Of a stretch of DNA of 64,000 nt, positions 28,949-51,726 are shown piece after piece. The notes beneath the pieces were generated by a model. The model was not told where the DNA came from, made no database searches, and worked only from the letters and a program-made list of their open reading frames with translations. Within the stretch, counting starts at the first letter, position 1; each line of letters opens with the position of its first letter. The DNA is from Phaeosaccion multiseriatum (Eukaryota; Protista; Ochrophyta, other classes): assembly GCA_965112735.1 (NCBI GenBank), contig OZ218950.1, positions 6,944,001 through 7,008,000 on the forward strand, in the 5' to 3' direction. The position numbers and the translations under genes were made by a program.

Positions 28949-31900
28949 ATGGGAAACACCGGAGGCAGAAGCACCGGGGTTGATGAAGGCGAGCAGCAAA
29001 AGCAAGGTCAGCAGCGGCGGATCGGCAAGAGTAGTTCCGTTCCTCACCTCCCCTCCTTCGAAGAAAGCTGCGCGACAGAGCGCACGAAGGTGAAGCGGGG
29101 TCACCTTGCGAAGCAAGCATGCGACGGACAAAGCTCGAGGCGAGGGAGGAAGGAGGGGTCATCAGATGTGGTATCTTCCTCTCTCCAGCGGCGGAGGCTT
29201 CTCCATTCCCAAAGCGCCCCTCTGGACCAGGAGAGGGACAGAGGGGACCGCAGAGCAGCAACAAAAAGAGGGGGAAAGAGAAGGATGAAGAGCGCCGTCT
29301 TGGGCGAAGCAACAGAGCCGGGTAGTAAACGAAATGCTGATGAGACCGCTTTCCTCGTGCCTCAGATTTCACCTCAGCCCTCGAGCGAGCGGCGACTGAG
29401 GCATGCCGTGGAGAGAGGAGACTACAACAGACTCAGCCTGTTGCTGGGACCAGGCAGGCCCTCTGACGACATGGTTGAAAGCACCAGGAGCCACGCACAG
29501 GCTCTCCCCCAACGCACCATCGCGAATCTCATGGTCATGGCGGCGGCGCAGGGGCAGCACCTCGACATTATGGAGCTTCTGTTGCAGCACGCAGACTCGG
29601 AAACCCTCCGCGATGGAGTGGGGGGGCAGCTCCCTCTTCACGCGGCGGCTGCGGCGGGTGCGTATGAGATGACTGCCTTGCTCTTGTCTGCGGGCATGAG
29701 CCACGCACAGCGAGACGCAGAGGGGAAGTCCGCCCTGCACCACGCTGCTGCACTGAGGCAAGCAGTGGCGGCTGACTGTGTGCACCTCCTGTGTTCGGCG
29801 GCTGCAGAGGCAGAGGCAGAGGCAAGGATAGGCGCAGGGAGGCGGATGGGCAGAGGAGAGGGAGGTTATGACAGCTTGTACGATGTGGAGGGGTGGGTGG
29901 ACTCGAGGGGGGACTCAGCGCTGCACGTGGCGGCGAGGAAGGGCGCAGTGGACGCTTTAGAGGCCCTGGTGGGCGTGGCGCTTACCTTTCGAAGGGGGCA
30001 GCAAAGGGCAAGGAGAGGAAGAGGTAGTGGTAGAGGAGGAGGGCGGAGGGAAAAGGGGTGGAAGGGCAGTGCCGTGATGAATGGGGAAGGAGACACAGCC
30101 ATGGCCCTCGCCCTGAGGAGCGGTTGTGATGAATGTGTGCACATTCTGGCCACAGGGAAGCGGAGGGAGGCGCGTCCTTCTCGCCGGATAGCGCGGCCTG
30201 TGGAAGGGGGTTTGGGCAGCACAAGTAGTAGTAGTAGTCTCAGGAAAGGGAGAAGGAGAAGGAGAAGTAGGGTGGAGAGGTGTGAGGGCCTCGATGGGCC
30301 GGGCGGAGGGGAGGGGGCTGTGGGTGGCGTTGAAATGGACACAATTATGGCCGTGTGGGCCACTTTCTTCGACAACGCCCTGCTGCGGGGGCTTTCGGAC
30401 GACTTTGAGTGGAACTCTGTCTCTGTCTTCGACGACGCGGATGCACAACTGGTGAGGGAAGGAGAAGAAGAACGCGGAGGGGCGGGGGGAGTACGGAGAG
30501 GTGAGAACGGAGCCCTGACCCTGACCGGGTTGTTCAGGGGAAGGGACGGACTGGAGAGCGAGCAAGCAAGGTTTGCCGGTAGAAGCGAAGCAAGCGGGAG
30601 ACTGCTGATGGGGAATTTGGCATGGCTGGAAGGAGCGGAACAGGAGTGCGGAGGTGGGGAGGGAGGAGGAGGAGGGAATGCAGAGGCAGCGAGGAGCATA
30701 CTCTCATCAGAGGCCGCCGAGACAGAGGGGGAGAGAGGGGCACATTATGCCGGACCTGGCGTGGGGGGCGTGGTGGGTGCAGATGGAGGAGAAGAGAGCC
30801 ATCTCGAGCCACCACCACTGAGTAGGTGGAGTGGTGCTAGGGTTAAGTCAGCACCTGGGTACGAGGCAGAGCGCTGCGAGAATGAAGGGCACGAGCAGCA
30901 GGTGGTGGTGGTGGTGGAGGAGGAGGGGAAACAAGAGGAGGAGAACAAGGAGGAGGGGGGGGAGGAGAAGGCGCGGAAGAGCGATGAAGGGTGGTTGGAG
31001 TGCTGGGACGAGTCGAGTGGTGCGACTTACTTCTTCCACCAGACCACGGCTGAGTCGAGATGGAGCAGGCCTGATGATTTTGGAGTACAGAGCGGGGTAG
31101 AGGGGGGAGGGGTAGAGACAGGACGACAGAGAGCAAGGGGGGTGCGAGAAGGCGAGAAGGCCTTCGTTGAGGGGCAGCGGCTCCATGGGAAGGGGGCTGA
31201 GGAGGAGAGAAATGCCATTGGGAAAGAAGGTATAGAAGAGGAAGGGGGGGGGGGGGAAGAGGAGGGGGAAGAGGAAGAGGAAGAGGAGGAGGAGGAGGAG
31301 GAGGAGGAGGAGCAGGAGGAGGAGAAGCAGGAGGAGGAGGAGGATGAGGAGGAGGAGGAGGAGGAGGAGGAGGAGCAGGAGGAGGAGGAGGAGGAGGAGG
31401 AGAAGAAGAAGAAGAAGAAGAAGAAGAAGAAGAAGAAGAAGAAGAAGAAGAAGAAGAAGAAGAAGAACAAGAAGAACAAGAAGAAGGAGGAGGAGGAGGA
31501 GGAGGAGAAGGAGGAGTGGACTCGATGCTGGAGCGACGAACACAGCTGTTGGTACCGGGTGAATACCACGACGGGGTTTGCAGAATGGGAGCAGTGGGGA
31601 AAAGAGCCGGCAGAGCAGCAGCAGCAGCAGCAGCAGCAGGAGCAGCCGGACGAGGAGCAGGAGCAGGAGCAGCAAGGTGAGTCTTCCGGGGGGGGCGCCC
31701 CTCTGTCTGCAGGTGGAGGTCGGGCGTCGCTTAGACCTGGAGAGGGCGAGCGACTGCGGTTGCCTCTCTCCTTCTCGCGCCTACAGGTGTGTGTGGGGCC
31801 ATCAGACGCTCACCAGAGGAGGGCGTGGGATGGTGTGGCGGGCGCATGGTACGTGTACGACACAGAGACGGGAGAGTCGCACTGGGACGAGAGGCAGTGA
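28949..31900 (+). CDS. Ankyrin-repeat and WW-domain protein (apparently single exon), possible N-myristoylation
   Basis: Ankyrin motifs LPLHAAA, GKSALHHAA, GDSALHVAARKG, GDTAMALA. WW-like segments GWLECWDESSGATYFFHQTTAESRWSRP, EWTRCWSDEHSCWYRVNTTTGFAEW and RAWDGVAGAWYVYDTETGESHW. Poly-E/poly-K tract. Confidence 0.75.
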   Translation: MGNTGGRSTGVDEGEQQKQGQQRRIGKSSSVPHLPSFEESCATERTKVKRGHLAKQACDGQSSRRGRKEGSSDVVSSSLQRRRLLHSQSAPLDQERDRGDRRAATKRGGKRRMKSAVLGEATEPGSKRNADETAFLVPQISPQPSSERRLRHAVERGDYNRLSLLLGPGRPSDDMVESTRSHAQALPQRTIANLMVMAAAQGQHLDIMELLLQHADSETLRDGVGGQLPLHAAAAAGAYEMTALLLSAGMSHAQRDAEGKSALHHAAALRQAVAADCVHLLCSAAAEAEAEARIGAGRRMGRGEGGYDSLYDVEGWVDSRGDSALHVAARKGAVDALEALVGVALTFRRGQQRARRGRGSGRGGGRREKGWKGSAVMNGEGDTAMALALRSGCDECVHILATGKRREARPSRRIARPVEGGLGSTSSSSSLRKGRRRRRSRVERCEGLDGPGGGEGAVGGVEMDTIMAVWATFFDNALLRGLSDDFEWNSVSVFDDADAQLVREGEEERGGAGGVRRGENGALTLTGLFRGRDGLESEQARFAGRSEASGRLLMGNLAWLEGAEQECGGGEGGGGGNAEAARSILSSEAAETEGERGAHYAGPGVGGVVGADGGEESHLEPPPLSRWSGARVKSAPGYEAERCENEGHEQQVVVVVEEEGKQEEENKEEGGEEKARKSDEGWLECWDESSGATYFFHQTTAESRWSRPDDFGVQSGVEGGGVETGRQRARGVREGEKAFVEGQRLHGKGAEEERNAIGKEGIEEEGGGGEEEGEEEEEEEEEEEEEEEQEEEKQEEEEDEEEEEEEEEEQEEEEEEEEKKKKKKKKKKKKKKKKKKKKKNKKNKKKEEEEEEEKEEWTRCWSDEHSCWYRVNTTTGFAEWEQWGKEPAEQQQQQQQQEQPDEEQEQEQQGESSGGGAPLSAGGGRASLRPGEGERLRLPLSFSRLQVCVGPSDAHQRRAWDGVAGAWYVYDTETGESHWDERQ

Positions 31901-32000: not shown

Positions 32001-32700
32001 GGCATATGGGCAGACAAACAGACAGAGGCGTATAGGCAGACAAACAGACAGAGGCGTATGGGCAGACAGATGGTGCCAGAGAGTTGTGCAGGCCAGCAGC
32101 AGCGAGGAGTACATACGTATGCACATATGTACGCAGCCCCGCCATGTGGCTGGCGAGCGTTTCATAATATATTCATCAAGCCAACCTTTTCACTTGCGAC
32201 TATTGTACGGCCCACCCATTGCTCGACCCAAACTCCACCGCGGCGAAGGAAGGAGATGAGGCGGATGGCAGCGGATGGCAACAGGGCGATCCGTCATTAC
32301 AAAGGTCAAGGCCCCAGGTATCGGCACCAGGGCCCTCCACACGCACGCACACGCGCTCCCAGCCCCTTCCGCCCCCCCCTCTTGTTCTCACCCGCTCTCA
32401 CCATGCTCTCCTCCAGCACCGTCCACTCCCCGTCCTGCTTGTCGGCATCATTATCATCATCATCACCGTCATCCCCTCCCCCTCCTGAGCGATAGCGGTG
32501 GTAGGCAGTCGCATAGCCTCGGGTAGTGCTCTCCACGCTGGCGCCCTTCCTCTTTGTGGCAGTGGGGCAGCACCGACTCCTTCTGCTGGTGATCCTGCCA
32601 CCGCCTTCTGCGGCCAGCGGGATAGGGAGCTCTCGAATGGCGTTTCAGTTTCAGCTCATCGGGAGGAGGGGGGCTCATGTGGTCTCGTGTGAGAGAGGGG

Positions 32701-33278
<578 letters not shown>

Positions 33279-33764
33279 TCGCCCAGTTGAGCAGTTTTGG
33301 TCACGCGTCCCAGGTAGGGGTGGGTAAGGAATTTTAGTGGCACTGCAATACACCAAATCGCCTTTTAGATGTCTCGATCTCTCTCTTCTTATAATTGTAT
33401 AGTTTACTCTATATGTATTTTTTTAATTTTAATTCTAAAAGCAAGAGACCCCCCACAGTGGCGAGCAAACCCCCCCACTCCCTCTTCCTTCCGGCCCTCT
33501 TCCTTAGTGCGCTCTTAGAATACACGCGCACTCAAGCCCCTACTTACACTCACCCACACCAAAACACCCCACACACAAGCATGTCCTCTGCCCTGTCCTG
33601 TCGGCCGTTACACAGCCCCTCTCTTCCCCCCGAGGGACTCGACATCGACTCAAGGGGAGGCGCGCATGGCCCGGGCTCAAGCAATTCGCGATTGCTACCT
33701 CCCTCCCACGGCACAGCAGTTGGTGATACAGCAAGGCAGGAGCCCATCTCGTGGGACGGAGCGC

Positions 33765-35436
33765 TCAACAATCTCCGTAGGACGTAGGCCGGAACGGTTT
33801 CATCGGCACACCCGCGTAGTCCCAACACCAGGCAGCGCTTTCCCCGGCCACGATCATGCCCCCCCCTCCTCCTCGTGAGGCTCCTCCTCCTCCTCCTTCT
33901 TCTTCTTCTTCTTCTTCTTCTCCTTCTCCTCCTCCTCCTCCTTCTTCTTCTTCTCCTTCTCCTCCTCCTCCTCCTCCTCGTCCTCCTCCTCCTCCTTCTC
34001 CTCCTCTCCTTCCTCCTCCTCCTCCTCCTCTCGGTCCTACAGCGAGAGGACGGAAGACTTGTCCTCGACAGGGTTGAGAGTTGGCCCCAAAAACTGTACA
34101 GGGCTTGACAATGGTGCCTCCAATGATCTTACTCCCCACTCCCACCACCGAGGAGTGTCCAATACGGATGGGCAGGACCTCAAAGTGGCCCGGCCACACA
34201 GCATGAGGAGACAGAACGGCGCCTCCTGATAGCATGACCCCTTCCCCGAGCGATAGCAGGTGGTAGTCCAGCAGCCCACGCTCCGTGTCCACAAAGACCG
34301 AGGCAGCCACCGCCCCACCCTGCAGCCGCATATAGACAGGCAGGAGTGGAGTGCCCCGCATCCACGTCACAAACGACCCGCCCAGGGCATTGAAGTTGCT
34401 CGTGGCGGTGTGGCAGCCGCTCATCCAGCTTGGGGACATGTAACGGCCCGCTCGGATCCTTCCCATCACCGCCATGGCGACGACGCTGCACAGACAACCA
34501 ACTGCTGCAAACACGAGCAGGGCCACGGGAAGGAGCAGCGTCTGGGTATCGAACCTCGCCCACATGTCGTGAGCCGCCCCTGCTGTGGGCATGGAGGCAT
34601 GTGGGTAAGCCTCCCTCCGCTCGTCTTGCCACTCGTCAATGGGACCTTGGAACAACGAGAGGAGCTCGACGGCGGCAGCAGCGCAGCCGAACAACCGACA
34701 CACTGGGGAGGGCGGGTCGGGAGTGGGGGGGAGAGAGAGAGAGAGTGGGACAGCGAGGAAGCGTTAGGGGGAATCGACACGCACGCGGCCCCATTCTGAG
34801 GCCGGTATGCATTGAAAGGGGAAGGGGGAGGGAGAGAAATGGCATCTTTGCTGCAGGGAAGGCGCGAGAGGAGACGAGGCGTGAAGGTACGCTTTCAGTA
34901 AGTCAATGAGTCAGTAAGCCAGCCAAACTGCGTCCTCTGAGGCCCTCACCGTGCAGAGCGGCAGCGAGCAACGCCCAGAGGGAAGCCACCCCGAAAGGTG
35001 CCTTCGGCATGAGCTGCTCCTCCGCTTGCTGCTGCTGCTGGAACACGAGCCGAGAGCCTACCACCCCCCCCCCTCCTCTTCTTCTTCCTCCGCGTCTTCC
35101 TGTCGCCACGCGAGTTACTCGCGCGGGGATGCCCGTCGTTGTCGCTTCCAAGGGCACCACAGTCTGCTTGGTATACGCACACACACGTACACACACACAT
35201 GGAGCGAGAGTGAGCGAATGAAGGGAGGGAGGGAGAATGGGCGAGGCCCCGCCAAATGTGTGTGTCCGTGCGTTAAAAAAAGCAGAGCGAGGCGCTAGGG
35301 GGGAAGGAGCAGAGCAGTCTCGACAACTCTGAGTGAGTGAGTGAGTGAGTGAGTGAGTGAGTGAGTGAGTGAGTGGGTGAGTGAGTGAGTGAGTGAGTGA
35401 GTGGGTGAGTGAGTGAGTGAGTGAGTGAGTGAGTGC

Positions 35437-35503
<67 letters not shown>

Positions 35504-37306
35504 GTAACAATAACACTACCACCACCACCCTCACCACCACCAATAAACAACAACCCCAGTCAGCAGCTCCCACCTTCTCGCTGACCCAAGAGAGCGAGCT
35601 AACGAGCGCCAGCGACTCCACCCTGCTGCCTGCGCCCACGATGCTGTCGTCGCCCACAGCAGCCCCCACCTCCACCGTACACCCGGTGAGCACTCCCCTC
35701 TCGCTCTCCGTCAGCAGCAGGGCCGCCCGCCCCACAATCGTATTGGCTTTGATACGAACCGTGTCAGGGTCCGTGAGCACCACCCCAGCTCCTAGGAGCA
35801 CGGAGGAGTGAATGCCCGCCCCCAGGAGGCGGTAGTAGCCCACCAGTATCTCTGTGGAGCTGAACCAATTCATGAGCACCGTGTCGGAGGTCCGGATGAT
35901 GCGGTTCGCTGTCTCTCTCCGTGCGCGGGCGAAGGGGCTGAGAGCGGGCACCTTGGTTCCTCTCTGCTGCTTGCCTACGAGCAGCCACTTGAGCAGAATG
36001 GTGATGCACACGGCCGTGACTCGGATCAGGGCCATGTAGAGGAAGAGCAGGAGGAGTGCGGTGTAACGGCCGAGATTGAGGCTGTCGGACACGTGTAGCT
36101 GCAGCCAGATGCACAGTATCAGCCCAGGGGCGAACTAAGGGGCGGATTGGGTGCATGGGAGGGAGGGAGGGAGGGAGGGAGGGAGGGATGGGGGGGGGGG
36201 GAAGGAGAGAGGGAAGGAGAGAGATGGTGAGGGAGGCAGGGACGGTGAGGGAGCAACCACAGACTCAGCTTAGAGCACGAGAATGCTCCCCTCCTCCCTG
36301 TACCATCAACATAATCTCGATATAACCGAGAATAACAAACTCAAACTCAAACTAGTCCCTCCGCTCCCTCACCATGGCAACATAGCACAGCCATAGGAGA
36401 TGTGCCTGCAGCAGCGACTCGGCTATACTCAGCCCCCCGCTCCTGCTCCTCCCGCTACTGTCGCTGCTGCTACTGCTGCTGCTGCCACTGCTGGTCCTTG
36501 TAATACTCCAGGTGGAATCCCCACTGGTAGCAACGGGGACGGCAGCAGCCGGACTGCCCTGATAGGCACGCTGACTCGCCAGACAGGCGCCCGGAGGGAC
36601 AGCGCTGCGAGTGCGGAGACTCACTCCTTCCTCGAGAGTAGCGTCTCCGTGGACCACGCTAAAGGCGTCGAGGCGACATCTGGGCCCGATCTTGACCTAA
36701 GCACGGGGCAGGGGATGCCAGTGGAGAGGCGGTGGATGGCAGTGGATGGCAGTGGATGGAGCGGTCGATGGCAGTGGAGGGGCGGTGGGGAGAGCGGCGG
36801 TGGGCAGACGAGGGGGAGAGGAGGGTGTGAGTGAGTGAGTGAGTGAGTGAGTGAGTGAGCGAGGGTCCGTTGGGGGGGGGGGGGGCTGTGGCATATGCTC
36901 CCTTCCAAATACAACACAAGGTCAGTGGTGGTATGTTTGTCTTCTCTTCCCTCTCCCCCTGTCTTCTCTCCTCTCCCCTCTCTTTTTCGCATCCTCTTCC
37001 CGCTCTCCCCTTGCCACAAGAAGCGTACACCTCCACCTTCGCTCACTCCTCCTCCCCGTTCTCTCTCACCTTCCCGTATCTTAGCCTCATTCTCCCAAGG
37101 AGAGACTTGGGTGCGAGTACGGCCCGCTCGTTGATGGAGCAGTCGCTGCCGATGTCCACGAGGTCGAATTCGCTCAAGCGCACCTGTAAATGGAGAGGCA
37201 TCGACACATTCGACATTCGATATATTCGAGGTCAATATACTGAAACTGAAACGGAAACTGAAAACACGCTGGCCTCCTCTAGTCAGCAATAGCAGTCCTC
37301 CTCCTC

Positions 37307-37345
<39 letters not shown>

Positions 37346-39646
37346 CTACTCCTACTCCTACTCCTACTCCTACTCCTACTACTACTACAACGACTACTCT
37401 CTCCTGCCTGCTATCACGCGTGCATGCACTCACCCCCGTAAGGTCGGTGCCTGTGCCAATCTTGGCGCCGAGGAGGCGGTACAGGGGCACGAGGAATACA
37501 GAGTCCCTCAGGGCACCGAGTGCGACGGGGTAGAAGAAAAAGCCCAGGAATAGCTCCACCGTCCAGCTGAGAGGGGGGAGGGATGGTAGTGGATGTTAGT
37601 GGATGGGGGGGAGGGGGGGAGGGAGAAGGAGAGGAAGAGGGGGAGGGGGAGGGGGAGGGGAGGGAGAGGGAGAGGGGGAGGGAGAGGATAGGGGGAGGGC
37701 GGAGGGAGAAGGAGAGGGAGCGAGAGGGGGAGGAGGGAGGGGGGGGGGAAGAGTGAGTGAGTGAGGCCGAGGAAGGCGAGGGCGAGACCAGTGCCGCTTA
37801 CGTAAAGCACGACCCAAGGCTCCGCCTCCTCCCTCCTCCTCACCAGCGCAGGTGGTAGCCGCTGTAGATCTTGTGTTCACCGGCGCGATACCTCCCGACC
37901 ACCAACCACTTTGTCGCAATGGAGGCCAGCAGGGTGGTCACCAAGAAAGCAAGGAAGCCCAGGGCAAGGGAAACAGTGATGAGCACGAGCGGGCAGGCCG
38001 TGTCCAGCAAGGCCTGCAGAGACGACAGAGTGTACGCCTCGATGCCGCGGCTTCCTTGACCTTCGTGTACTTCGAGCAGCTTCATGCCCTGTGAAGTAGA
38101 GCGGTGAAGCAATGAAGCAGTGAAGTAGTCACGGGCAGAGAGAGGAGGGGGGGGGTGGGGAGGATGAGGGGCGGAAGCGTTGGCGTGGGGCATGTGCACA
38201 ACAGTGTGAGAAACAACCGCCGCAACTCTTCACTCCCCTCCCCGTCTGAACTCTGGAGCGTTTCGATATCGAGATGCTCGACACGACGTTGATCGAGGGC
38301 CAATTCAACAGACACTGAAAGTAAAACTCAAACCTATCGCACACACCTGGAAGAGATTGAGCAGCGGCACACCGGACACCCACAGCACCACCGTCAGCGG
38401 CACTTTCGCGAGCAACACGAGCACCAAGAAGGCCACTGCCAACAGCGACGCTATCTGCACCAGCCCCACCCCAGCCAGTCGGCAGCCGCTCATGTGACCC
38501 AGTTCAGCCTTCCGAGAGGAGGGTATATGGGCATCCTGCGCCTCCTGCCACTGGTGCAAGGGGTTTCCCTCACCACCCTGATCATGGCTCTGGCCCTGAC
38601 CCTGACCTCGAACCCTGCTGCTCCTGCCATCGGACAGCCCAGGTCCTCCACCTCCCCCTCCGCCTCCTGCTGCTCCTCTTCCCTCTCCTCCCATCCTCCC
38701 CGTTGCCCTCGTCTCGCATGTCTTGCTGATGAGGCTGGCAAAGGCCCTTAGGCTTGGGTTGTCGAAGAGGGCAGCGGGCGTGATGGTGGCGCGGATCTTT
38801 CTAGCAGCCGCGTGCCGCACCCAGTCCGCTGTTGTCGTTGTCGTTTCCCCTCCTCCTGCTACTGTTCGTGAGATTCCTCTCGATCCCCCCCTTGATCCTC
38901 CCCCTTCCCCCCCCCCTCCTCCTCCTCCTCCTCCCCCTTCCCCCCCTCCTCCTCCTCCTCCTCCTCCTCCTCCTCCTCCCCCTTCTTGCCTGGCTGCTGC
39001 TAGCGCGTGCTCGAAGCTCCCCCCTCCTCGAATGGCACTAGCCACGCCCCCTACGCTCCCCACATGCCCAGCGCTAGACGCCCTGTCCGGCCTCACCCAT
39101 GCCCTTCCTCCCAGTCGCCCTCCACTTCTCTCTGACGGCTCTCTTCCTCTCGCGGAACCCATCGAAACCGGATTCGTTGTAACCGTCGTTGTCGCCAGTT
39201 GGGGGGGATACTCTCCTACCCATGCCGCCGCCGCCGCCACCGCCGTCGCTGCCTCAGCCGAAGCCAACACAGGGGGAGAGTTCGGTCGAAGAATGCTGCG
39301 CTGGCAGACGCTCCTAATGTCTCTCGAGCCCGAGCCAGGGGCAACAGGGCCGGCAGAAGAGGGCCCCGACCCCACCCCCCTGCCGACCACATCGTCCACG
39401 ACCCGCTTCACGAAGGCCTCGATGGCCCACGCGTCGTAGCAGAGCAAGTGTAGCAGTTCGGTGTCCGGCACGGACAAGAGGCCTTGCGTCGCACCTGGGG
39501 AGATGGGCATCGCATCATCCTCTCGGCGGCCACCAACGACGGTGGACTGGTCCTTCCCTTGTCCTTGTAATTGTTTGTTGCGCGAGCTGCTGTCCCCGTC
39601 CCTGTCCCCCACCTCGTCCTTCTCGGCGTGTGAGGCGGAAGCACCG

Positions 39647-39679
<33 letters not shown>

Positions 39680-41204
39680 TCACCAGCTGGTGATACGCCC
39701 GGACCGCCCAAGCCACCGCTCCTAAGGGTTGAAGCCGAGAGTAAGTGAGGTGTGATCACTGAAGGTGCGCCACCCACGCTGCCGCTCATCCGCCCGGCCG
39801 CTGCCGCTGCGCCTGCGACCCCTTCGCCTCCGTCTAAGCCCAGCTCCAAGTCGATCGCCAACTGTGACTCTCTCTGTGACTGTGTCGGAGGTGGCAGCTG
39901 ATGGGCCACACCGCGGAGTGCCTCCATCACAATCAAACAAATTGCCCTGACCCGCTCTGAGGAAGCCATGACTTGCAGCGCCGGCAGCTTGCCCGCGCCG
40001 ATGTGACTGGCTCCGCTACGATTGCTGCTGTTGATGCTGGTGCTGCTTGGTAGACCTGTACCCGCGTTGATGTTGCTGCTGCTGGCGTGCCAGTTCCACG
40101 GATCGCTCAGGTTACGGAGTATAATCTCTTGACCTTGACCCTGACCCTGACCCTGACCCTGACCCTGACCCCGAACCTGACCCTCACCCTGACCCTCACC
40201 CTGACCCTCACCCTGACCCTCACCCTGACCCTCCTGTCGTTCTAGTTCCTGCCTCTCGCCGCCCTCTCCATCGCTTGATGGCCCCAAAGACAGCATCCTC
40301 TCCTCATGGGCAGCAGAGAGGGCTTGCCCACCTCCTTCTCGTCCTCCCCTGCCCCCTCCCCCTCCTGCTCCTCCTGGTACTCCTCCTCCTTCAAAAGTCG
40401 CCATTTGCACCATGTCCTCAATCTCTCTCCCATTGTCCAACACGGCAGAGCTGTTCGAAGTGAGCAAGGAAGACAGGCCCTCACTAATGTCACTGCTGCT
40501 ACTACTGCTCCTGCTCCAGCTACTGCTCCTACTCCTACTCCTGCAGCCGGACCAATCAATATCGTCGCCGATGAGGGGTAAGGGGAAGGAGCGTCGGGAC
40601 TCGAAGCCCCGCCAGGCCGAGGCAGGGGCGGGAGCTAAGGACGAGTGTCTTTCTCTCCCCCCCCCTCCTGCTCCTACTGTCGACCCTCTGCTCAGGACGA
40701 CGTGGGCGCACACCCCATTCTCTCCAAAGGAGTTGACTCCAGCTATAAGTACCGGGAGAGCGCGACCACCAAACCTGACCACACCTCCTCCTCCTCCTCC
40801 CACCCCTCCTCCCCCCTCTCTGAGCGGGGCCTGCAGAGGGGTCATCCTTGTGGGGAGGACGAAGGGAAGGCTTCCCAGTTGAAGCTTGGGATTGATCTCA
40901 CTCAGATGGAGGTTGGGTGGGGCCGCCCCGTGCTGCAGCACCAACACGGCCTTGATGAGCTGTGCCATTCCCGAGGCTCCCTCCATGTGGCCGAGGGAAG
41001 TTTTGAGAGTGCCCACCACCAGAGGGGATGCCCTGCCGCTACCCTCTCCGAAGACGGCCTTGAGAGTATCTGGTGTCAGGTGGTCAAGTGCCAGGGTAGA
41101 GGAGGGAAGACCGCGTGAGTGAGGGCGTCCAACAGAAAACTGAAATCGACATGGGACACACAAAAAGAGATGGGCAGAAAAACAAAAGATACACACAGAA
41201 CTAC

Positions 41205-41251
<47 letters not shown>

Positions 41252-44200
41252 CTTCCCTTCACCCCACCCCTCCACCCCTCCACCCCTCCAACCCAGCCCC
41301 CCTCACTCACTCACTCACTCACTCACTCACCCATCTCGAGTATGTCCCCCTGCTGACTCCCCTCCGCATCCGCCTCCACGTAACACACGTCCCTTCCTTC
41401 GCAGCCCGCTCGAGCCAGCGCCTCCCGCACCACCGTCTGCTGCGTGGCTCCCTGAGGAGGCGAGGGCGGGCGTGTCAAGCGACTCGCTTCGCTCTTGGCA
41501 CCTTTTGAGCTCCGAGACAAGTGTGACATGTCGTCTCCTCCTCCCTTCGATCCCCCACCCGTGCTCGCCGCCCCGGAAACGGACTGTCCCCCACTGTGGC
41601 TCACCGCCGTTGCTCTAACGACGGCAGCGATGGTGTCGCCGTCCCTCCTCGCGTCCGCCAAGCGCTTCAGTACGATGGCACCGCACCCCTCGGCACGAAC
41701 GTATCCGTCGGCCGCGGTGTCGAAAGACTTACAGCGCCCCCCTCCAGTGCCATCGCCTCCCCCCTCCCCTCGCCCGCCATGCTGCTGTCCACCACGCTGC
41801 TGCGAGAGACGCCCCTCCCTCCTCAGCCGCTGAAAGCCCCTCCGGTCCAACAAAAGACTCACCCCCCCCACCACTGCGGCGCTACACTGGCCCAGCACTA
41901 GGGAGGTGGTGGCCGCATCAAGAGCCACCAGCGCAGAGGGCGAGGACGCGTCATCGATGGTCCGAACGGGGCCCGTGAGAGCAAGCGTGTGCGAGATGCG
42001 GCCAGCCAAGCAGGTACCGGGCAAGACGGGGCTGGTGCTGGTAGACGTTACACTAACACCGCCTCCACCAACACTAACACCAGTACCAACACCGGTCAAG
42101 CTGCTGGCGACTGTACCACCAACTGCTGATGATGCTAATGACGGCTCGAGCTCGGGATGTTCACGCCACTCGGAGCCCGACATACCCATGAACAAGCCGA
42201 TGCGCTGCCCCTCCAGTTGCTGCCGTTGTATCACCAACTGCTCCTCCTCCCCCTGCTGCTGCGGTCCCTGGCCGAGGGTGCCCCCTCCCCCCGCGACGCC
42301 CCCCCCTGCGGACGGTTTCTGAGCCCCCTCCTGCCCCTCCTCCTCCCGCCTGGTCCACGGCCAATGCCAAGGATGCTCAGCTTCACCACCATCTCCGCCC
42401 ACACCTCCACCTTCCTCCTCCGACGGTGGCGGCAGCCCCTTCTCCTTCTTCTCGAAGCCCGCATTGTGTAGCACCTCTGTGGCCACCTCGAGCATGATGC
42501 GTTGGTTGGGGTCCATTGATTGGGCCTCGAAGGCTGAGATGCCGAAGAAGGCGTTGTCGAACATGTCTACGTCGTCGATGAAGCCGCCTGCGAGTGAGCA
42601 CATACACGGAAGAGAGCGGGGCAGAGCACGCAAGGAGGGGATGAGGGAGGGGCGGAAGCGGCCTCATTTGATTGGGCGATTTGCGTATGCCATCAGATTC
42701 AGAGGGGGGGGGAGGGAAGGACAAAGGGGTTTGCGTGAATCGAAAGAAACGCACGCACGCACGCACACACGCAACACGCACGCGCCCACACACCTGTCTC
42801 GTCCCCCAGCCCCCTCAGAGGAGGAGCAGTGCCCACGCAATCTCTTCTCGCGCAGAGCGAGTTCCACAGCCTAGAGACGGTGTCGCACCCCCCGGGGTAC
42901 CTGCACGCCACTCCCACCACCGCAACATCCAACTCGTCTCTGTCTCTCTCTCCCTCTCTCTCCACCTCCCTCCCTCTGTCTCTCTCTCCCTCTCTCTCCA
43001 CCTCCCTCCCTCTGTCTCTATCTATCTCTCTGGCTCTGGATCTGTCTGTGTTTCTGGCTCTGATTCTCGCTCGAGGGTCGTTCACCACTCCCTGCGACAG
43101 GCTGTCCAAGAGGGGGGGCGCCTCCATCGCTGGTGATAGAGTACTTGGTGATACAAGATAATTTGGTGATGCGACAGGTGGTGATACCAGAAAGCCGGTC
43201 CCGCGGTGGTCCACGCCTCCTCCTCCCGCTGGGGGCGACGCTTGCCGCGCTCCTTCTCCTTCGTCTCCTCCTTCGTCTTCTGCTTCGGCGTCGGACCACT
43301 TCCCTCCCAATTGGACTCTCCCGCTGCCTGCTGCTCCCGCACCTCCTCCTACCACCCCACTACTGCCGTCCAGCCCTTCTTCAATGCCTCCAAACCTCTC
43401 CTCTTCCAGGAACGCTGCCAGCAGCGCCGGAGTGGGGTAGTTGAAGAGCGCCCCCACATCAACCTCAAACCCAAACTGTGGGTCGGGGCCTTTGCTGCAC
43501 CCGCTGCCGAACGTCCCCACCCCCCCCCTACCAATGCTACCCCCACCTCCCACGCTGCTATTGCCCCCACTCTGACTGTTCCCCAGCGATGCCCCTCCTC
43601 CTCCTCGTCCGCCCGCTCCCTGCCCTGATCTAGTGCTCCCACTGAGGCTGCCAGACCCAAATCCTGTGCCCACCCCTCCTCCTTCATCGTCGCTACCGTC
43701 GTCGTCTCCTCGCCCTAGCCACTCCTCCAAGGCATTTGCCAGTTGTGACACCAGCAGGGGTGTCATGCCTTCCTCGATGAAGTTGTCATTCGGCTTGAGT
43801 TTGAGTTTCAGGACGATCTCTTCTGTCTCTGTCGCCGTGGCGTCTGATTTGGCACGCTGCTGCGGTATCAACAACTGCTGAGCCTGTAGAGCGTCCTGGG
43901 CGAGGGCCAATATCCCGTCTTGGAGTAACGCCACTCTCGCGTGCTTTGGCTTGGATGCGATGAACGACATAGGAAGAGACGTTGCCTGTCCATGGAACCG
44001 CAACGCACCACCACACACACACGTGCACACGCACACACACGTACACGCACATACATACACGCACGCGACAGAGCAGCGTTCTTAGGCATCGATTGACTGA
44101 CCTTGCTAGATCACCAACAGGGGCATAGAAAATGCGAGCAGCCAAGATGGTAACATGGCGCCTCAACATTGCGAACCGGAGTCACAATAAAGTCAGGGCG

Positions 44201-47200
44201 TGATTGCCTTACCTTGATCAGCTCTGCTCTTGTCCCTTCTCCTCCTCCTCCTCCTCCTCCTCGTCCTCGTCGTCGTCCTCCTCCTCCTCCTCCCCCTCCC
44301 CCTCCTCCCCCTCCTCCTCCTCCTCCTCCTCCTCCTCCTCCTCCTCCTCCTCCTCCTCTTCCTCCCCCTCCTCCTCTTCCTCCCCCTCCTCCTCCTCCTC
44401 CCCCCTCTCTCCCACCCCCCATCACCCCACCTCCCTCCTGCTGCTGTATCACCAACTGCTCGCTTCGGTTGCCTGCCTCCACCTTCTGTCTCAATCCCAA
44501 CCCCCCCGAGCCGAGTCGAACATACCCGATCGCTCCGCCCCCAGTCCCTGGCGACCCCAGCCCCTCCGCTCCCGAGCTATAGACCAAGTCGCTGTGAACC
44601 CTTGCCGCGAGTGAGGCCGCGTAGGCCGCAGCGCACTCTGCCTGCGGGGAAGACAGTACCGTTGACCCTACATACAGGCCCCCCATGCCCTGCAACCCTT
44701 CCAGCACGGTGTACACGCCTAAGCGGATGTCTTCGCAGCTAAAGTGGGGGAAGTAAGGCCGCTCCACAAAGTGGGTGAGTCCTTTGAGTGGGGGTTGGAG
44801 GCCCAAGCTTGCCAAGTCCGCCCTGAGACTAGCCTGCGTCATGTTTCCCGTCTCGTCTGCAAAGGCCAGCACCCGTACTGTGCTGCTGCCCATATGCCTC
44901 CGCCTCTTGCCGGGTTGCAGGTGGAGCATACTGCGTCGCCCCTGCTTCTCTACCCCGTCCTGTCCAACAGCCGGGGCCGAAGCCACGCCGTACCAGCCTT
45001 CCTCGACATTATCGAGCTGCTCGACATCGAGGTCTGGCTCGATATCAGGGTCCTCGAGGACGCGACAGGGGATTACTCCCAGTCGCTGCTCCTCCTGCTC
45101 CTGCTTTTGCTCCCCCGGTTGTTGTTCTTCGTTCTCGTCCTCCTCCATCCCTTCCATCTCCTTCTCCCTCTCCTCGCCCTTCTCCTCCTCCCCCTCCCCC
45201 TCCCCCTCCCCCTCCTCCTCCTCCAGCTCGGCCACTGCCCTGGCGGAACTCAGGTACAGCACGCGACGAAAGATGCGACACAAACGAGTCGACACGTCAT
45301 CAGTGCCCTGCAAATAGGCTGCCATCGGAGCGGGATCATGTGCCATGACCACTCTGTCAAAGGCAAGGGTCTCTCCGCTCCTTAGCTTCACTAAACACTT
45401 CCTCCTCCCCGTGGCCCCATCCACTGCCATCCCCCTCTCCTCCGCTGCCGTCCCTTCTTCCTCGGCCCCACCCTCCCCAACAAAACTGCGCTCGTCCTCC
45501 GCATCTTCGTCGATCAGATACTCTGAGTCGTCCTCGTCTTCGTCCACTGCCGTCCCCTTATCCTTAGTATCAAAGACCCAATCTCGGATGTTCCAATCCG
45601 CCCATGCACTGCTGCCCCTACTTCTCCCGCTGCTATCGCTGCGGCCCCTACTCGAGCTTCTCCCCTTCCCTCCCCCACTGCTGTTCGAGCTTGAGCTACG
45701 GCCTCTGCTACCGACACTTGTACCCGTGCTCCTCCCCCTGCTATTGCTCCCGGTACTCCTACCTCTGCTTTGTCCTCTACTCCTCCCTCGGCTATTATTC
45801 CCCCCCCCCCCCGTACCACCGGAACTGCTGCCGCCTAAGCTCCGAACAGCACTCGGCCTTCCTCTGCTGCTGGTGCTGCTGCATATGGTGCTGGCAGCCG
45901 TTGCGAGGGTCGCGCCTGATCCGGAAGAAGCGCCCCCGGCCCCTCCTTTGCCCCCCTTGCCACTGCTACTCAAGGCACTGCTGGTGTTGCTCAACGTTGG
46001 CCTCGCAGGTATAGGGCTGGGTGCTGATCCTCCGCCGCGCGGCAACACACTCACTACTTCGCTGTTGAGCCTACAGTCCAACAGGCTGGCAGCGACACTC
46101 TCCCACAGCGCCGAAAAGCCGCCCTCTATCTTGGAGCGTGTTTCCGTGCAGCCAATGCTCGACACAAACTGTGGGCGTGCGAGGTTGGGTAGGAAGGTTG
46201 GGTAGGAAGGTTGAGTAGGCATGGTTGGGTGGGCAGGGTTGGGTATCAAGATTGGGTCGTGAGTAGGCAAGGTTGAGCATCGAAGGCACTATAGAGCAAA
46301 AGCAAGCGCGCAGCGAGCAGTTTCGGTCCCTTCCTCATCCCAACCCCCCCCCCCCCCCCTTTTTTTCTCTCCTCCTGCTCCTACTGGACCGATTTGACTC
46401 ACCCCGATCAAACCCCTCCCCGCCACTCCTCCACCTCAATCCCTGCCCATATGCCTCTTCCTCTCTCTCTCAACACACACACACACTGTTTCTCTCCTTT
46501 CTCTCCTCTCCCTCTTTCCTCTCCCCCTCTTCCCCTCCCCTCCCGCCTCTCCGTCCCTCCGTCCCTCCCTCCCCCCCTCGCCCTCACCTTGCGCAAGTAC
46601 GTCATGGGCAAATCTTGGCAGATCAGGCCGTAACCCGCTGCTGCGAATTGCGGCCCCATTACAGGCTCAAAGTAATGCTGCGTCCACTCGTCCTGCTGTG
46701 ACAGCCAGGTCCGAACAGTAAGACACCTCCCGCCCCCCACGCCTCCCACCGTGTCCGAAGGGGCCCCCTTGCCGATGGAGGCCATAATCTTGCGGGTCAA
46801 CCGCGCGAGTGCGATTTGGGACTCTCGTTGTTGCTGCATCACCGACTGCTGCTGCTGCTGCTGTTGCTGCTGCTCGCCAGTCGTCCCCCCGGCGATTGGA
46901 GCAGGAGCAGTACCAGCACTACTATGAACAGGAGCAGCAGCACCATCGACCTGCTCGCTCTTATCGTGTGGAATTTGGTGATACACAGTGGCGTGGTCTG
47001 GCACAAGGTCGTGTCCGAACCTCTCCGCCAAGGCCTTGATGTGCACGGACCGGTCGGGGAACACGGCGTGGCCGCCCAGAGGTAGCGGTACCGGAAGCGC
47101 AGCCTTCTCCTTCCCCTCGTCCTCCTTGTCTCCGCCCCCATCAGCAGCAGCAGCCGAGTACTCGGCCGAGGACGCACCGCCCACAAAGCCCCTCCTCTCG

Positions 47201-50200
47201 AGCAGCGTGACTTTATGGCCTCTGTCTTGGAGGTGCAGAGCCACATTGAGCCCGCTCGCCCCGGCCCCGATCACACACACATGCTGCGGTGGATGCTGCA
47301 TCGCCCCCTCCTCCTCCTGCTGTACAAACTGCTGCTGCTGCCGCCGCTGCTGCTGCAAACGATGCGGCGGCGTCATGTGCTGAAGATGCGGCGGCGACAA
47401 CTGATACTGCTGCTGCTGCTGCTGCTGGCGCTGAATCACCAACTGCTGCTGCTGTCGTCGCCACTCCTCCTCCTCCTGCTGCAGCCGCTCCCGCCTCCCT
47501 CGCACCTGCGCCTCTGCTTGCTTCCTGCGGTTCACAATCATCTTCATGCGCTCATCGGCGGTCATCTCCTCCGCCATCGGAGACAGGTGTCGTCGCATCC
47601 TGTGGCCCGAAGTACCACCTCCACCCTCGCCCCTCGCAGTGGCTGAAATCGGCTTGTGTTCTCTTCCACCTGTCCTCCTCTCGGGTCGGTTGCCTAGTCG
47701 TTGCTGCTGGGGGGGTGGTGACTGCTGCAGTCGCTGTTGCTGAGGCAGCGACAAGTGCTGCACCTGCGCCTGGTGCTCCTGCTTCTGCTCCTCCTGCTGC
47801 TGCTGCTGCCGCTGCCGCTGCTTCTGCTGCTGTTTCTGCTCCTGAGGCTCCTCCTCCGCTGGAACTACTCGTTCTATCTCTCCTCCTCCCCCTCTCCCTC
47901 CTCCTCCCCCTCGTCGTCTTCGTCCTCCTGCTGCTGCTGCTGCTCCTCTTCTCTGCCTTGTCTCCAAAGCCCCACCCCCTCCACCTTCCCTCCCGGTGGG
48001 GGGTATCTGCCGTGCCGGCTCTTCCGTTGGGAAGCTCCACACAACATCCTCCCGGTGCTCCCCGCCCCTGCCCCCCTTGCTGCTGCCCACTCCCCCCCCC
48101 TGTCCGCTGCCATCCCCGCCTCCGGACCCCTCACTGCTTGTGGCGAGAGAGCTCCGAGTCGGGGTGGGACCGCTGCGCGAAGGAGGAACCTCCATCTCGT
48201 TCTCTTTGGTTTGAAGCGCATCCCTCCGTGCAAGTCGCACTGCTCTCTGTTCGCCTGCGTCTGCGCCTCCACCTCCACCTCGTACCACCGTCCTGTTGCT
48301 TCCTCGCACTACTCCCACCACCTCCCCCTCCTCCTCCTCCTCCTCCTCCTCCTCCACCACCACCACCACCACCTTCTCCTTGCTCTTCCTCTCCTTCTTT
48401 TTCTTCTTTTTGTCCTTCTTCCTCTTCTTTCCCTTCCTCTCCCCTCCCAACAAAATTGAGGACGACAAACTAGTAGTAGTCAGCGACCGCTCCCCCTCCC
48501 CCTCCCCACTCCCCTCCCCCGTCCTCCTCCACATCTCGCTCAAAATCTGCAAACCGTCACTGTGAAGCGCGTCCCTTGTCGCCCTTCGTCGCAGCTGACC
48601 GCTGTCCGTCCTAGGTATGCTCCCTGCCTTGACCACCGCTACCCTGCTCCCCTTCACTCCGCTCACCGTTCCCATGATAACTTCCTGAGCTAACTCCGCC
48701 ACCCCCTCGGCCTCGGCCTCTGCCTCGGCCTCCTCGCCGTCGCCTTCTGCCCCCCCCGACTCAGAAACCAACTCCAGCACCACCTCCAGCACGCCGTCGC
48801 TGCCGTCTTCCAGCGAGGAGAAGGCCGCGATACTCCCATGCCCGTGCCTTGTCACAGATGGCAGCGCCTTCAGCAGGGCGAACTCAATGTCCTGAGGGTA
48901 GTGACACACTCCCCGCAGAGCGATAAGGTCCATGATACGACCGCACACGAACAGCTCACCCCCCTCGAAAAACCCAACGTCGCCAGTGCGCAGGTACACA
49001 CGGCTGTCGGCTGCTCCCCTTCCCAACCCTCCTCCTCCTCCTCCTCCTCCTCCTCCTCCTCCCTCCAGCCGCGCCCGGAACACTTGGTCTGACAAGGTGG
49101 GGTTGTTCCAATACCCCGCTCCCACTGACGCGGAGGAGATCCAAATCTCGCCCTCTTCCGTGCCATTGCCATCGGCGACCATCCTCACTTCCCTCCTGGA
49201 CGCAGGGTTGACGATCTTGATGTCCATGAAGCCTGCAGACAGCTCCGGACGGCCTACGCTGAGGAGATCGGGTCTTTGCTTGGATCGGTGCAGAGAGTCT
49301 GTCCGGCAGCCTGAGGAGAGGGGAGAGGGGAGAGGGGAAAGAGAGGGGCATTGGAGGCATTGAAGGCACTGGTTGAGTGAGTGATTGATTGATTCAGCAT
49401 GCGTATTTAGTTATGAGTAGCAGTTAGCGAACACAGTAGCAGCAGTTGGTGACACAGCCGCAGCAGGAGGCTTGATCTTGCTAGTGCCCGGTTTCAGTGC
49501 AGTGTCCCTTTCAATGACCCACACACTCACCCAACGCGACGTGCTCCGATAACACGTAGCCTCCTCCAAACCACCTTCGCAGAGCAGAGTGGAGGGTTGG
49601 TGATACAGAGCAGAGCAGAGTAGGGTCACAGAGGAGGGGGGAGGAAGCAAGAGCAGTGAGCACTGATGGTGTAGTGGGTGGACGAGTTGTGGCTCTGCAC
49701 CCAAGCTCACAAGAGACAGAGAGAGAGGGAGAGAGAAAGACAGAGAGGCGGGGGGGGAGAAGAGAGAGAGACAGAGAGAGAGAGCAACAGCGAGAGCGGT
49801 AGACGGAGGGAGAGGGACGCGAGAAATGGCCACACTCCTTCCCTTCCCCCCCCGGACTTGGCGTGTAGTGTACAGTACGTACCTCTCAGGCAGGCCACAA
49901 GGCTCAAAGGCCTCTCCAAAGCGCTCCACCGTCTCCAGGCGAGTGCGCTCGGTGGCGCTCTGCAGACACACCACACACGACAGGTCGAGAGAGAGTAGCA
50001 GCGCCGCCGTGCCTGAGGCCAGGTTTCCGCGCTGGGAGGCCATGTCCACCTGTGTGTCAGTATCAGTTTCAGTTTCAGTTGATTAGATTATGCTTCTGAA
50101 GCGAACTGAACCGAACGATTATCCAAACGCAAGCGAGTGGATGATTGTCAAGCAAGAGGTGTTAAAAGTCGGTGTAAAATAGACTAATCGACACTTCTGT

Positions 50201-51726
50201 GCTCACCTGTCTGGCGCACAAGGCGAGGGCTGAGTCTGGCGCAACGGACCAATGGCAGCGGTGTCGGGACATTAGCTCCAGCCACAGTAGGGGGCGGCGG
50301 AAGAAGGAGGCTGGTGACATGTAATGCATATGCATACCCGTCAGGAGCGGGGTGAGCAGACACGTCACCAAGCCAACGTCCTTAGGGAGGGGGGGAGGGG
50401 CAGGGGCAAGGGGGAGGAGCAGGCGGGTGAGAGGGGCACGGGAGGCGGGGGGGGAGGGGCGGGGCGGCTTGGGTAACGGTGTAGATGAGACGGCAGAGTG
50501 CCCGAGAAAGGACAGAGAGCATGGAGACCCCGACGTTGGGGAGGGGGGGAGGGAGGGAGGGAGGGAAGGGGCCCACTCACATGGTACTGCGGTAGCCACG
50601 AGAAGCCTGTCATGCCCAAGTCATGCACCTCCCTCTTAGTCCCTCCATCGCTTTTACCGCCACCCGCTCCCCCCTCTCCTCCTGCTGTTGCTGCTGCTAC
50701 GCCTGCTCGTGCTCCTGCTCCTGCCGCAGAGACCCTATCAACCCGACTGTCCTTCGCATTGACCCTCTCCTTGAGTCTCTGCATCCCGCTGGGATGACTG
50801 GCAGTGAGGTATACGTTGGCCATGAGGGCGCTGAATGTGACCATGACTCCTTTGGGGTCGCCCGCAGATCCACTCGTGTACTGGAGGAAAGCCACGTCTT
50901 CATCCTGGATGCGCAAAGCTTTCAGGTAGCTGCTGCGATACCAAAGCACATGCGATACCAAAGAGGGGGTGGTGAGTAAAGCAAGGAAGGAAACAACAAG
51001 GACTTCTGAGTGAAGGGGGTCGTACCTCATGGTGCTGGCGGAGAGCGACGGCGCCAAGCCCCCGAACACGCTCTCGTCTGTGGGCTGAAAGTCGAGGTCG
51101 GGCCAGAGATCCTTGGACGTGGAGCGAAAGTTGTTCCTATCCATGGCGCGCTGAGCCATCACGCCAGAGTCTGTGAGGCACAGCAAGGGGCTGCAGTCCG
51201 CCACGATGGAGCTCAGGTGGGGCAGAGAGGAGGCTAGGGGAGGCGACGGAGGATACACCGTCACTGCCACCACCCCGGCTCGCAGGCAGCCGAGGAAGGC
51301 GGCGAAGAAGTGGAGGCCCGGGCCGTAACACAAGAGCACTCTCCCGCTCTTGGGTACACGCCATTCATGCCGGAGCTTGTACGCCACCCGTCCGGCCTAA
51401 GAGGCGGCAAGAGGAGGTTAACACATGCAAACAGACAAAACAAAAATAGAGAAGAGAGTATGGTGTGTTACAAAGGGCAGGTAGGCACCAAATCAGGCAC
51501 AGGCACCTCTTCTCGGCCCTGAGAGGCCTGGGTTACCCCCACACACTCAGCCGGGCTTTCTCACCTCTTCCCAGATCTCCTTGAAGGTGCATTTGTGCGT
51601 CTCTTGGCCCTTCCCATCGTACCAGTGAGCAAAGGTCTCTGCGCCATGCTGAGCCACGACTTGCTCCGCCCTGCGATGGAAAGGTGTTCCACCCTCCCTC
51701 AAACGTGTTGGATGACACGCCGCCAT
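33765..51726 (-). CDS. Hybrid megasynthase-like protein (~4,550 aa, 18 exons): FAAL - PAI-like FAD oxidoreductase/isomerase - ACP - KS - ACP - Pls/PosA-type transmembrane/left-handed beta-helix terminus
   Basis: Manually spliced GT-AG exons, all phase-compatible: 51726-51565, 51396-51026, 50932-50581, 50380-50207, 50049-49883, 49574-49531, 49310-46588, 46168-44213, 43985-42794, 42587-41331, 41069-38347, 38088-37844, 37566-37434, 37183-37070, 36696-36373, 36134-35574, 35163-34950, 34702-33765 (13,650 nt). Domain motifs are given in the sub-features. Confidence 0.8.
34060..38480 (-). other. Pls/PosA-type NRPS terminal domain: three transmembrane plus hexapeptide beta-helix repeats
   Basis: KWLVVGRYRAGEHKIYSGYHLR, YRLLGAKIG..EFDLVDIG, KWLLVGK, YYRLLGAGI..DPDTVRI, GTPLLPVYMRLQG..DYHLLSLG..PIRIG, with hydrophobic helices between them. 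Confidence 0.8.
35330..35502. repeat. Compound (GAGT)n + (AAC)n microsatellite, intronic
   Basis: Seen directly within the megasynthase intron between exons 16 and 17. Confidence 0.95.
38715..39960 (-). other. Degenerate acyl-carrier domain 2 with large low-complexity insertions (Ser replaced by Ala)
   Basis: PDTELLHLLCYDAWAIEAFVKRV...ITPAALFDNPSLRAFASLI. Confidence 0.5.
40690..42930 (-). other. Type I PKS ketosynthase domain, catalytically degenerate (Cys to Ser, first His to Asp)
   Basis: VAVVGVACRYPG, FDNAFFGISAFEAQSMDPNQR, GRISHTL, TIDDASSPSALVAL (canonical DTACSS), CKSFDTAADGYVRAEG, YVEADAEGS (canonical EAHGTGT), KTSLGHMEGASG, GVNSFG. Confidence 0.88.
43405..43915 (-). other. Degenerate acyl-carrier domain 1 (Ppant Ser replaced by Pro)
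   Basis: PNDNFIEEGMTPLLVSQLANAL...VDVGALFNYPTPALLAAFL; the canonical motif is FxxxGxDS. Confidence 0.7.
44590..47285 (-). other. FAD-dependent domain related to polyunsaturated fatty-acid isomerase (PAI)/amine oxidase family
   Basis: VCVIGAGASG...LLERRGFVGG, FAAAGYG..QDLPMTYLRK, GGFSALWE, YFPHFSCEDIRLGVYTVLEGLQG. These resemble recalled Cutibacterium acnes PAI motifs (FTAFGYG..VPAAYV; YFPHVSSEDYKAGWYEKVEGMQG). Confidence 0.7.
48560..51726 (-). other. Fatty acyl-AMP ligase (FAAL) domain of the megasynthase; A10 Lys replaced by Gln
   Basis: AFLQYTSGSAGDPKGV, SWLPQYH|DVGL, RRPLLWLELMS, GYVLSEH, EGEIWISSASVGAGYW, YLRTGDVG, GRIMDLI, HYPQDIE. IPRTDSGQLRR replaces canonical PKTxSGKxxR. Confidence 0.85.

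Follow-up and report, generated by a model that had tools for sequence, protein, structure and literature searches.

The 64,000-nt stretch of Phaeosaccion multiseriatum DNA analysed here (the window; positions 6,944,001 to 7,008,000 of contig OZ218950.1, assembly GCA_965112735.1) contains, on its minus strand, a gene of 18 exons and 17 introns with a coding sequence of 13,650 nt, comprising 4,549 codons and a single terminal stop (Table 1). The domain order of the predicted protein is FAAL (fatty acyl-AMP ligase), PAI-like flavoenzyme, carrier, ketosynthase (KS), a possible second carrier remnant and a Pls/PosA-type terminus, and very large low-complexity inserts lie inside domains. Pfam matches on the minus-strand open reading frames (ORFs) are, in order, AMP-binding, FAD Rossmann (DAO, NAD_binding_8, Amino_oxidase), PP-binding and the N- and C-terminal halves of a KS, and the NCBIfam matches on the ORFs are FAAL families (best 3.9e-31) and, in two downstream exons, the Pls/PosA family TIGR02353 (1.3e-10). 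These matches bear out the FAAL, PAI-like, carrier, KS and Pls-type domains that an earlier note, made from the letters of this DNA, had listed in this order; the second carrier of that list is unproven. In agreement with the same note, which had recognised no acyltransferase (AT), ketoreductase (KR) or thioesterase (TE), neither these domains nor a dehydratase (DH) or enoylreductase (ER) match any exon ORF at E<=0.01, and the introns are too short for a domain to be hidden in them. The residues predicted at the catalytic positions show that thiotemplate chemistry in cis would be impossible for this protein.

The exon junctions were read by hand and then assembled, and this independent rebuild gives the same limits as the continuous 18-exon frame of ~4,550 aa proposed earlier. 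All 17 introns are bounded by GT-AG and are 93-419 nt long. Estimated from base composition, ~145 stops would be expected by chance over the 4,549 codons; none is present. Tandem arrays have a period that is a multiple of 3 in 36/39 cases in exons and in 14/43 cases in introns, the 3 non-triplet exon arrays being alternative descriptions of one 36-nt array. GC content is lowest at codon position 2 in 17 of the 18 exons, a pattern that the introns do not have. Furthermore, in the FAAL the alignment with four FAAL-Pls relatives is collinear and crosses junctions 1 and 3-6 without a gap, junction 7 is crossed by homology inside the flavoenzyme in the comparison with the Marchantia domain, and junctions 11-15 are covered by homology to the Pls profile inside the Pls-type domain. 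Introns 9 and 10 lie inside the KS domain; indeed, every complete catalytic domain is split by introns, single beta-helix units excepted. The sole junction without homology across it is that of intron 8 (44212-43986), at the boundary between flavoenzyme and carrier. Two local variants of the model can be written: intron 2 is in frame, and its retention would insert 31 aa, and exon 12 has an alternative in-frame acceptor 75 nt downstream. The splicing is thus predicted from the splice sites, the frame, the composition and the periods of the repeats, together with homology over most junctions.

The four sequencing runs that contain the stretch (X1-X4) are DNA runs from one sample, with no RNA run listed. 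DNA contigs are uninterrupted across introns 7-9, where their depth is uniform; reported read joints have sides of ~20 nt at low-complexity words and were rejected as artefacts. The contigs are letter-identical to the window over the first carrier and KS (41340-42931), so the unusual residues of these two domains are not assembly slips, a confirmation whose independence is limited if, as is possible, the assembly was built from these same runs.

Table 1. Features of the megasynthase-shaped gene and of its neighbourhood in the window
Feature	Window position	Strand	Residues, exons and evidence
Whole gene	33765..51726	-	ATG at 51726, stop at 33765-33767
Exons 1-6 (high-low)	51726-51565, 51396-51026, 50932-50581, 50380-50207, 50049-49883, 49574-49531	-	
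Exons 7-12 (high-low)	49310-46588, 46168-44213, 43985-42794, 42587-41331, 41069-38347, 38088-37844	-	
Exons 13-18 (high-low)	37566-37434, 37183-37070, 36696-36373, 36134-35574, 35163-34950, 34702-33765	-	
FAAL	48511..51726	-	aa 1-690, exons 1-7; Pfam AMP-binding 4e-20, NCBIfam FAAL 4e-31
PAI-like flavoenzyme	44600..47295	-	aa 1096-1854, exons 7-8; Pfam DAO, NAD_binding_8, Amino_oxidase
Carrier 1	43377..43847	-	aa 2030-2186; PF00550 7e-6 on ORF
KS	40678..42932	-	aa 2335-2930, exons 9-11; Pfam ketoacyl-synt 3e-40, C-terminal 2e-13
Possible second carrier remnant	38713..39516	-	aa 3318-3585, ~190-aa low-complexity insert
Pls/PosA-type terminus	34020..38520	-	aa 3650-4465, exons 11-18; TIGR02353 1e-10 on one exon
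Transmembrane segments			aa 3661-3703, 3731-3772, 3969-3995, 4003-4034, 4221-4252, 4288-4322; hydropathy
12-nt-unit tandem array	32472-33422		
Ankyrin-repeat + WW ORF	28931-31897	+	989 aa
RBM39-like RRM ORF	19236-20759	-	
Helicase-related ORFs (AAA_12, Helicase_C)	9559-10929, 16053-17279	+	
Open frame running off the window start	1-3858	+	1,286 aa

The N-terminal domain has FAAL motifs A3, A5, A7 and A8, and its best NCBIfam matches are FAAL, FadD32 and FadD21. The solved FAALs 7r7e, from a cyanobacterial polyketide synthase (PKS; 8e-23, C-terminal half), and 5d6j top the PDB list, the best structural relatives being 7r7e and FadD32. In the alignment with 7r7e and six FAAL-Pls relatives, the position of the A10 Lys is occupied by Gln662 (codon 48597-48595). 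The A10 lysine is needed for acyl-AMP formation by ANL enzymes, and all six of the FAAL-Pls relatives keep both this Lys and the carrier Ser. Carrier 1 is split by a low-complexity insert of ~75 aa, its halves matching PF00550 positions 14-46 and 44-67, and Pro2059 (codon 43760-43758) stands in place of the phosphopantetheine Ser, the motif reading G-M-T-P vs G-I/L-D-S in the carriers of five relatives. A motif scan finds no G-x-D-S anywhere in the 4,549-aa protein. A second carrier is possible but unproven: neither half of the candidate region has a Pfam match, it has no significant similarity to the first carrier, and a carrier-profile scan of the whole protein reports only aa 3557-3583 and the equivalent part of carrier 1, both weakly. 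If the region is homologous, the Ser position is occupied by Ala3346 (39432-39430). Searches of solved structures with the carrier regions returned nothing or Gly-linker matches only.

The KS fold is present (PF00109, PF02801), with the KS 7zma of a type I PKS as best solved match (7e-44); the nearest database relatives are bacterial partial PKSs, at identity <=44%. Alignment with 7zma and comparison of conserved columns place Ser2595 (41946-41944) at the position of the catalytic Cys, which accepts the acyl group, and Asp2787 (41370-41368) at that of the first His, which serves in decarboxylation, the second His (His2827) and the Lys being retained. The Cys-His-His catalytic triad thus reads Ser2595, Asp2787, His2827, and the Thr residues that flank the site and contact pantetheine are also lost. 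The domain retains 69/85 (81%) of the columns conserved at >=90% in 44 KS, which themselves retain 96% on average and 85% at minimum. A KS fold kept without the canonical triad is shared with non-catalytic thiolase-fold partners and with variants (KS-CLF pairs, non-elongating KS0, DpsC-type). In CLF Gln replaces the Cys, and in KS0 the Cys is kept; the window KS differs from both in that the Cys and the first His have changed at once. DpsC-type thiolase-fold priming enzymes carry out acyl transfer by a Ser-His-Asp triad (PMC12664062); the Ser/Asp/His arrangement of DpsC is unlike that of the window KS, the Asp and His positions being swapped.

The flavoenzyme domain, which contains four low-complexity inserts totalling ~430 residues, was read from local domain alignments, as the large inserts break a global one. 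It has a GxGxxG...E...VGG FAD motif, beginning with the GxGxxG at aa 1105, and retains a C-terminal YFPH...ED...LEG.QG signature. A profile built from 21 plant and microbial PAI-like proteins matches it at E=9.5e-29, over profile positions 8-226 and 371-424, with the central ~145 positions (227-370), the substrate part, unmatched. The direct match to the structure of PAI, the Propionibacterium acnes polyunsaturated fatty acid isomerase (2b9w), is weak (E=0.031). The domain aligns with its Marchantia counterpart in three collinear pieces (1e-19), one of which spans the exon 7/8 junction, and the best solved relative of the Marchantia domain is PAI 2b9w (3.7e-30), followed by putrescine oxidase (4e-9). 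The label PAI-like, which the earlier note had also given, is therefore upheld transitively, through the likeness to the Marchantia family. Both 2b9w and the window domain have the FAD Rossmann N-terminus and the C-terminal signature common to PAI-like proteins (YFPH...ED...EG.QG), whereas PAI is free-standing and the window domain is embedded in a megasynthase, carries the inserts and has an unrecognised centre.

The C-terminal part is predicted to consist of three units, each with a transmembrane (TM) pair ahead of a left-handed beta-helix. The six TM segments are grouped 2+2+2, with Kyte-Doolittle (KD) scores of >=2.1 in five of them and 1.89 in TM5, compared with <=1.85 elsewhere. A profile of 45 classic Pls C-termini matches this region at E=4e-81 in three domain matches, as strongly as it matches the land-plant proteins described below; a search with the last beta-helix unit finds 327 relatives at E<=1e-3, mostly in three matched stretches, and the atlas neighbours of the domain are Hexapep and Pls/PosA clusters. 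The family-invariant His is kept as His4404 (34205-34203). Of the 70 columns conserved at >=85% in classic members, the terminus keeps 34, and P0125, a relative whose loading residues are intact, keeps 36; an acidic E/D cluster in the third unit is lost in the window protein and likewise changed in P0125. This arrangement is in agreement with the PosA model, in which six TM helices accompany a pseudo-trimer of left-handed beta-helices, and Pls/PosA synthetases share the three TM pairs and three tandem beta-helix units (PMC10522769). The synthetases of epsilon-poly-L-lysine and delta-poly-L-ornithine differ in that the window protein has no amino-acid adenylation domain or functional thiolation domain, that its terminus is preceded by FAAL, flavoenzyme and KS, and that about half of the classic conserved columns are changed.

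Land plants have related proteins of 2,300-2,465 aa, among them those of Eucalyptus grandis (XP_039159797, 2,313 aa, and others), Marchantia (MpACOS18, BBN01803, 2,465 aa) and Cryptomeria (GLJ23286), in agreement with the earlier note, which had named a land-plant flavoenzyme-FAAL-carrier-Pls protein without a KS. Their domains are an amine-oxidase-like flavoenzyme, FAAL, PP-binding and hexapeptide (Pls-type), in that order, the second and third beta-helix units being separated by a catalase-like domain that the earlier note does not mention; pieces of the PAI-like domain of this family are present in many angiosperms. The catalase-like insert lies at aa ~1800-2250 of the Marchantia protein (P0159) and at aa 1745-2005 of P0145, and it hints at fatty-acid hydroperoxide chemistry in the plant relatives. 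The FAAL (~30% identity), PAI-like flavoenzyme and Pls-type domain are homologous in plants and window protein, and the plant proteins are likewise single chains. In plants, however, the flavoenzyme precedes the FAAL, there is no KS, and Lys and Ser are intact, whereas in the window protein the flavoenzyme follows the FAAL, a KS is present, a catalase-like domain was not found, and Lys and Ser are lost. That the window protein is a rearranged, KS-containing member of the family, as had been suggested, thus holds for the three homologous domains, the different order and the added KS. The joining of a PAI-like domain to FAAL and Pls in two arrangements argues for functional coupling, in fatty-acid chemistry at the membrane.

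The representative search with the last beta-helix unit returned only distant relatives, most of them A-T-Pls proteins of ~1,300 aa; the long FAAL-bearing proteins, those of the plants and P0125, are among them. Identities in this search are <=35% over the matched stretches, and <=28% among the 40 strongest. The closest FAAL relative is P0125 (32% identity), an intronless FAAL-carrier-Pls protein of 1,749 aa in which Lys and Ser are intact. Its locus (L001:3001-8250), on an 11.5-kb Logan contig (SRR23287150), adjoins MFS/UNC-93-like and TMEM144-like genes. The order FAAL, carrier, KS is also that of the loading modules of bacterial type I PKSs (7r7e; FadD32/Pks13; CurL; 7zma); the differences are identities of <=44%, the absence of AT, KR and TE from the window protein, the inserted flavoenzyme, and the replacement of the catalytic Lys, Ser, Cys and His. 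No orthologue was found in a metagenome scan with exon 16, nor in a word-indexed search with the C-terminal part of the flavoenzyme, which reaches proteins of up to ~1,750 aa. Domain homology shows that the predicted protein belongs, in divergent form, to the lineage in which FAAL and carrier are linked to a Pls-type membrane acyl-transfer domain, and of which the land-plant proteins are also part.

Four catalytic replacements are firm (A10 Lys, carrier 1 Ser, KS Cys and KS first His), and a fifth, that of the second carrier Ser, is conditional. From what is established for ANL, carrier and KS domains, these replacements imply no acyl-adenylate, no phosphopantetheinylation and no Claisen condensation, and with these three steps blocked the protein cannot run as a cis assembly line. 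The earlier idea that it handles fatty acyl chains, read as loading and processing on a thiotemplate line, is not supported, given the four firm replacements, two of which, at the Lys and the Ser, affect residues that the relatives keep. On balance, the gene probably encodes a pseudo-synthase paralogue of the FAAL-PKS-Pls family that has been retained as a protein, and the best explanation of its form, held with the same confidence as part of this whole reading, is a membrane-anchored, megasynthase-shaped product of one intron-rich eukaryotic gene. The open frame and domain folds would have been maintained and the catalytic positions released from constraint. Any remaining activity would presumably lie in the flavoenzyme, whose FAD site and C-terminal signature are intact, and in the Pls-type membrane domain, which is as well conserved as in P0125; alternatively, the protein may serve by pairing with putative active FAAL-PKS-Pls paralogues in its own genome.

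Several points weigh against a retained pseudo-synthase. No RNA run was found, nor an orthologue or close relative from which selection could be read, and triplet repeats keep the frame even without selection. The unmatched central part of the flavoenzyme leaves the activity of that domain unproven. Within the KS, 8 of the 16 lost columns fall in three catalytic motifs that hold 21/85 columns, a modest clustering for which the motif windows were set afterwards. The same losses could instead mark a decaying, unexpressed or recently silenced duplicate, that is, a FAAL-PKS-Pls pseudogene whose frame is not yet broken. We regard this as unlikely, although it deserves serious consideration: four firm losses (five with the putative second carrier) are spread over FAAL, carrier(s) and KS, the inserts within domains are very large, the flavoenzyme centre and second carrier are barely recognisable, and neither RNA evidence nor an orthologue was found. 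Against decay, the 13.65-kb frame is intact over 18 exons with 17 canonical splice sites, non-triplet repeats are restricted to introns, profile scores remain strong for the KS, FAAL and Pls folds, and the Pls domain shows no greater degeneration than that of P0125, where the loading residues are intact. We favour the pseudo-synthase over a silent pseudogene because of the open frame, the canonical splice sites, the confinement of non-triplet repeats to introns and the recognisable folds.

The remaining readings give the protein or the gene a different standing. A working fatty-acyl line, in which a fatty acid loaded by the FAAL would be modified or extended by the flavoenzyme and KS and then released at the membrane by the Pls-type domain, would accord with the likeness of the domain order to FAAL-ACP-KS (ACP, acyl carrier protein) loading modules joined to Pls release logic, and with the intact residues of homologous plant proteins. 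It is scarcely credible here, given Lys to Gln at A10, Ser to Pro in the carrier and Cys to Ser and His to Asp in the KS, no second carrier with a Ser, no G-x-D-S in the protein and no AT domain found for extender units. The KS could have been neofunctionalised, with Ser2595, Asp2787 and His2827 acting as an acyltransferase or hydrolase on CoA- or lipid-bound acyl groups, carrier-free and with the flavoenzyme and membrane beta-helix domain as partners. The triad positions now read Ser, Asp and His, the fold is otherwise well kept, and DpsC-type Ser-His-Asp acyl transfer offers a possible precedent by analogy (PMC12664062), but the swap of Asp and His relative to DpsC, the failure to find a structure or relative with the same triad, and the loss of the flanking pantetheine-contact Thr residues make this rather improbable. 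The locus might also hold two genes, a FAAL-flavoenzyme gene ending at the stop 44113-44111 and a carrier-KS-Pls gene starting from an ATG in exon 9. Intron 8 alone has no homology across it, read-through into it meets a stop after 33 codons, and a Met lies early in exon 9. A split is nevertheless very unlikely, since intron 8 is a canonical GT..AG intron of typical length (227 nt) with a GC content below that of the flanking exons and with non-triplet repeats like those of other introns, the intergenic gap would be only ~140 nt, and plant relatives hold flavoenzyme, FAAL, carrier and Pls in one chain. Finally, and with considerable doubt, an expressed and selected pseudo-megasynthase may have turned into a carrier-independent membrane lipid enzyme, in which, as parts of one joint and equally doubtful proposal, the dead FAAL would bind a fatty acid, the flavoenzyme would isomerise or oxidise its polyunsaturated chain, and the Ser-His-Asp KS and Pls beta-helix domain would transfer the acyl group to a membrane acceptor. 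If true, this would be a new logic for thiotemplate relatives and a lead to the function of the uncharacterised land-plant proteins.

The gene is an uncommon example of a giant synthase whose frame and folds persist despite the loss of catalytic residues, and would thereby offer a natural control for which parts serve non-thiotemplate roles. Three homologous domains at this locus also tie the algal form to that of plants. Literature searches returned no paper on MpACOS18 and none on an algal or plant fusion of a PKS or a FAAL to a Pls-type domain; in a Cladocopium preprint, the function of an NRPS_term_dom gene is given as unknown. FAAL/PKS lines with a Pls-type end and their plant cousins are thus undescribed in the papers found, although the plant form has a wide distribution, being present in Marchantia, in a conifer and in many angiosperms. 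The value of the locus is limited by the missing expression data and orthologues.

Around the gene lie ordinary eukaryotic genes (an ankyrin/WW protein, an RBM39-like RRM protein and helicase-like ORFs), and no biosynthetic gene cluster is found among the neighbouring ORFs of the window. The frame at the window start is rich in G, L and R and has no Pfam match. The ankyrin-repeat and WW ORF, which has Glu/Gly low-complexity stretches, converges on the 3' end of the megasynthase-shaped gene, and ~350 nt downstream of the stop of that gene lies a tandem array of ~50 copies of a 12-nt unit, which reads CLSV in one minus-strand frame. DNA depth spikes, 5- to 40-fold, occur at CAG/GGA-type low-complexity words (window 42000-42400, 44400-44600 and 45400-45600), which indicates that such words are shared across many genomic loci. 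The low-complexity stretches of the ankyrin-repeat and WW ORF suggest that expansion of this kind is a habit of the whole genome and not a peculiarity of the megasynthase.

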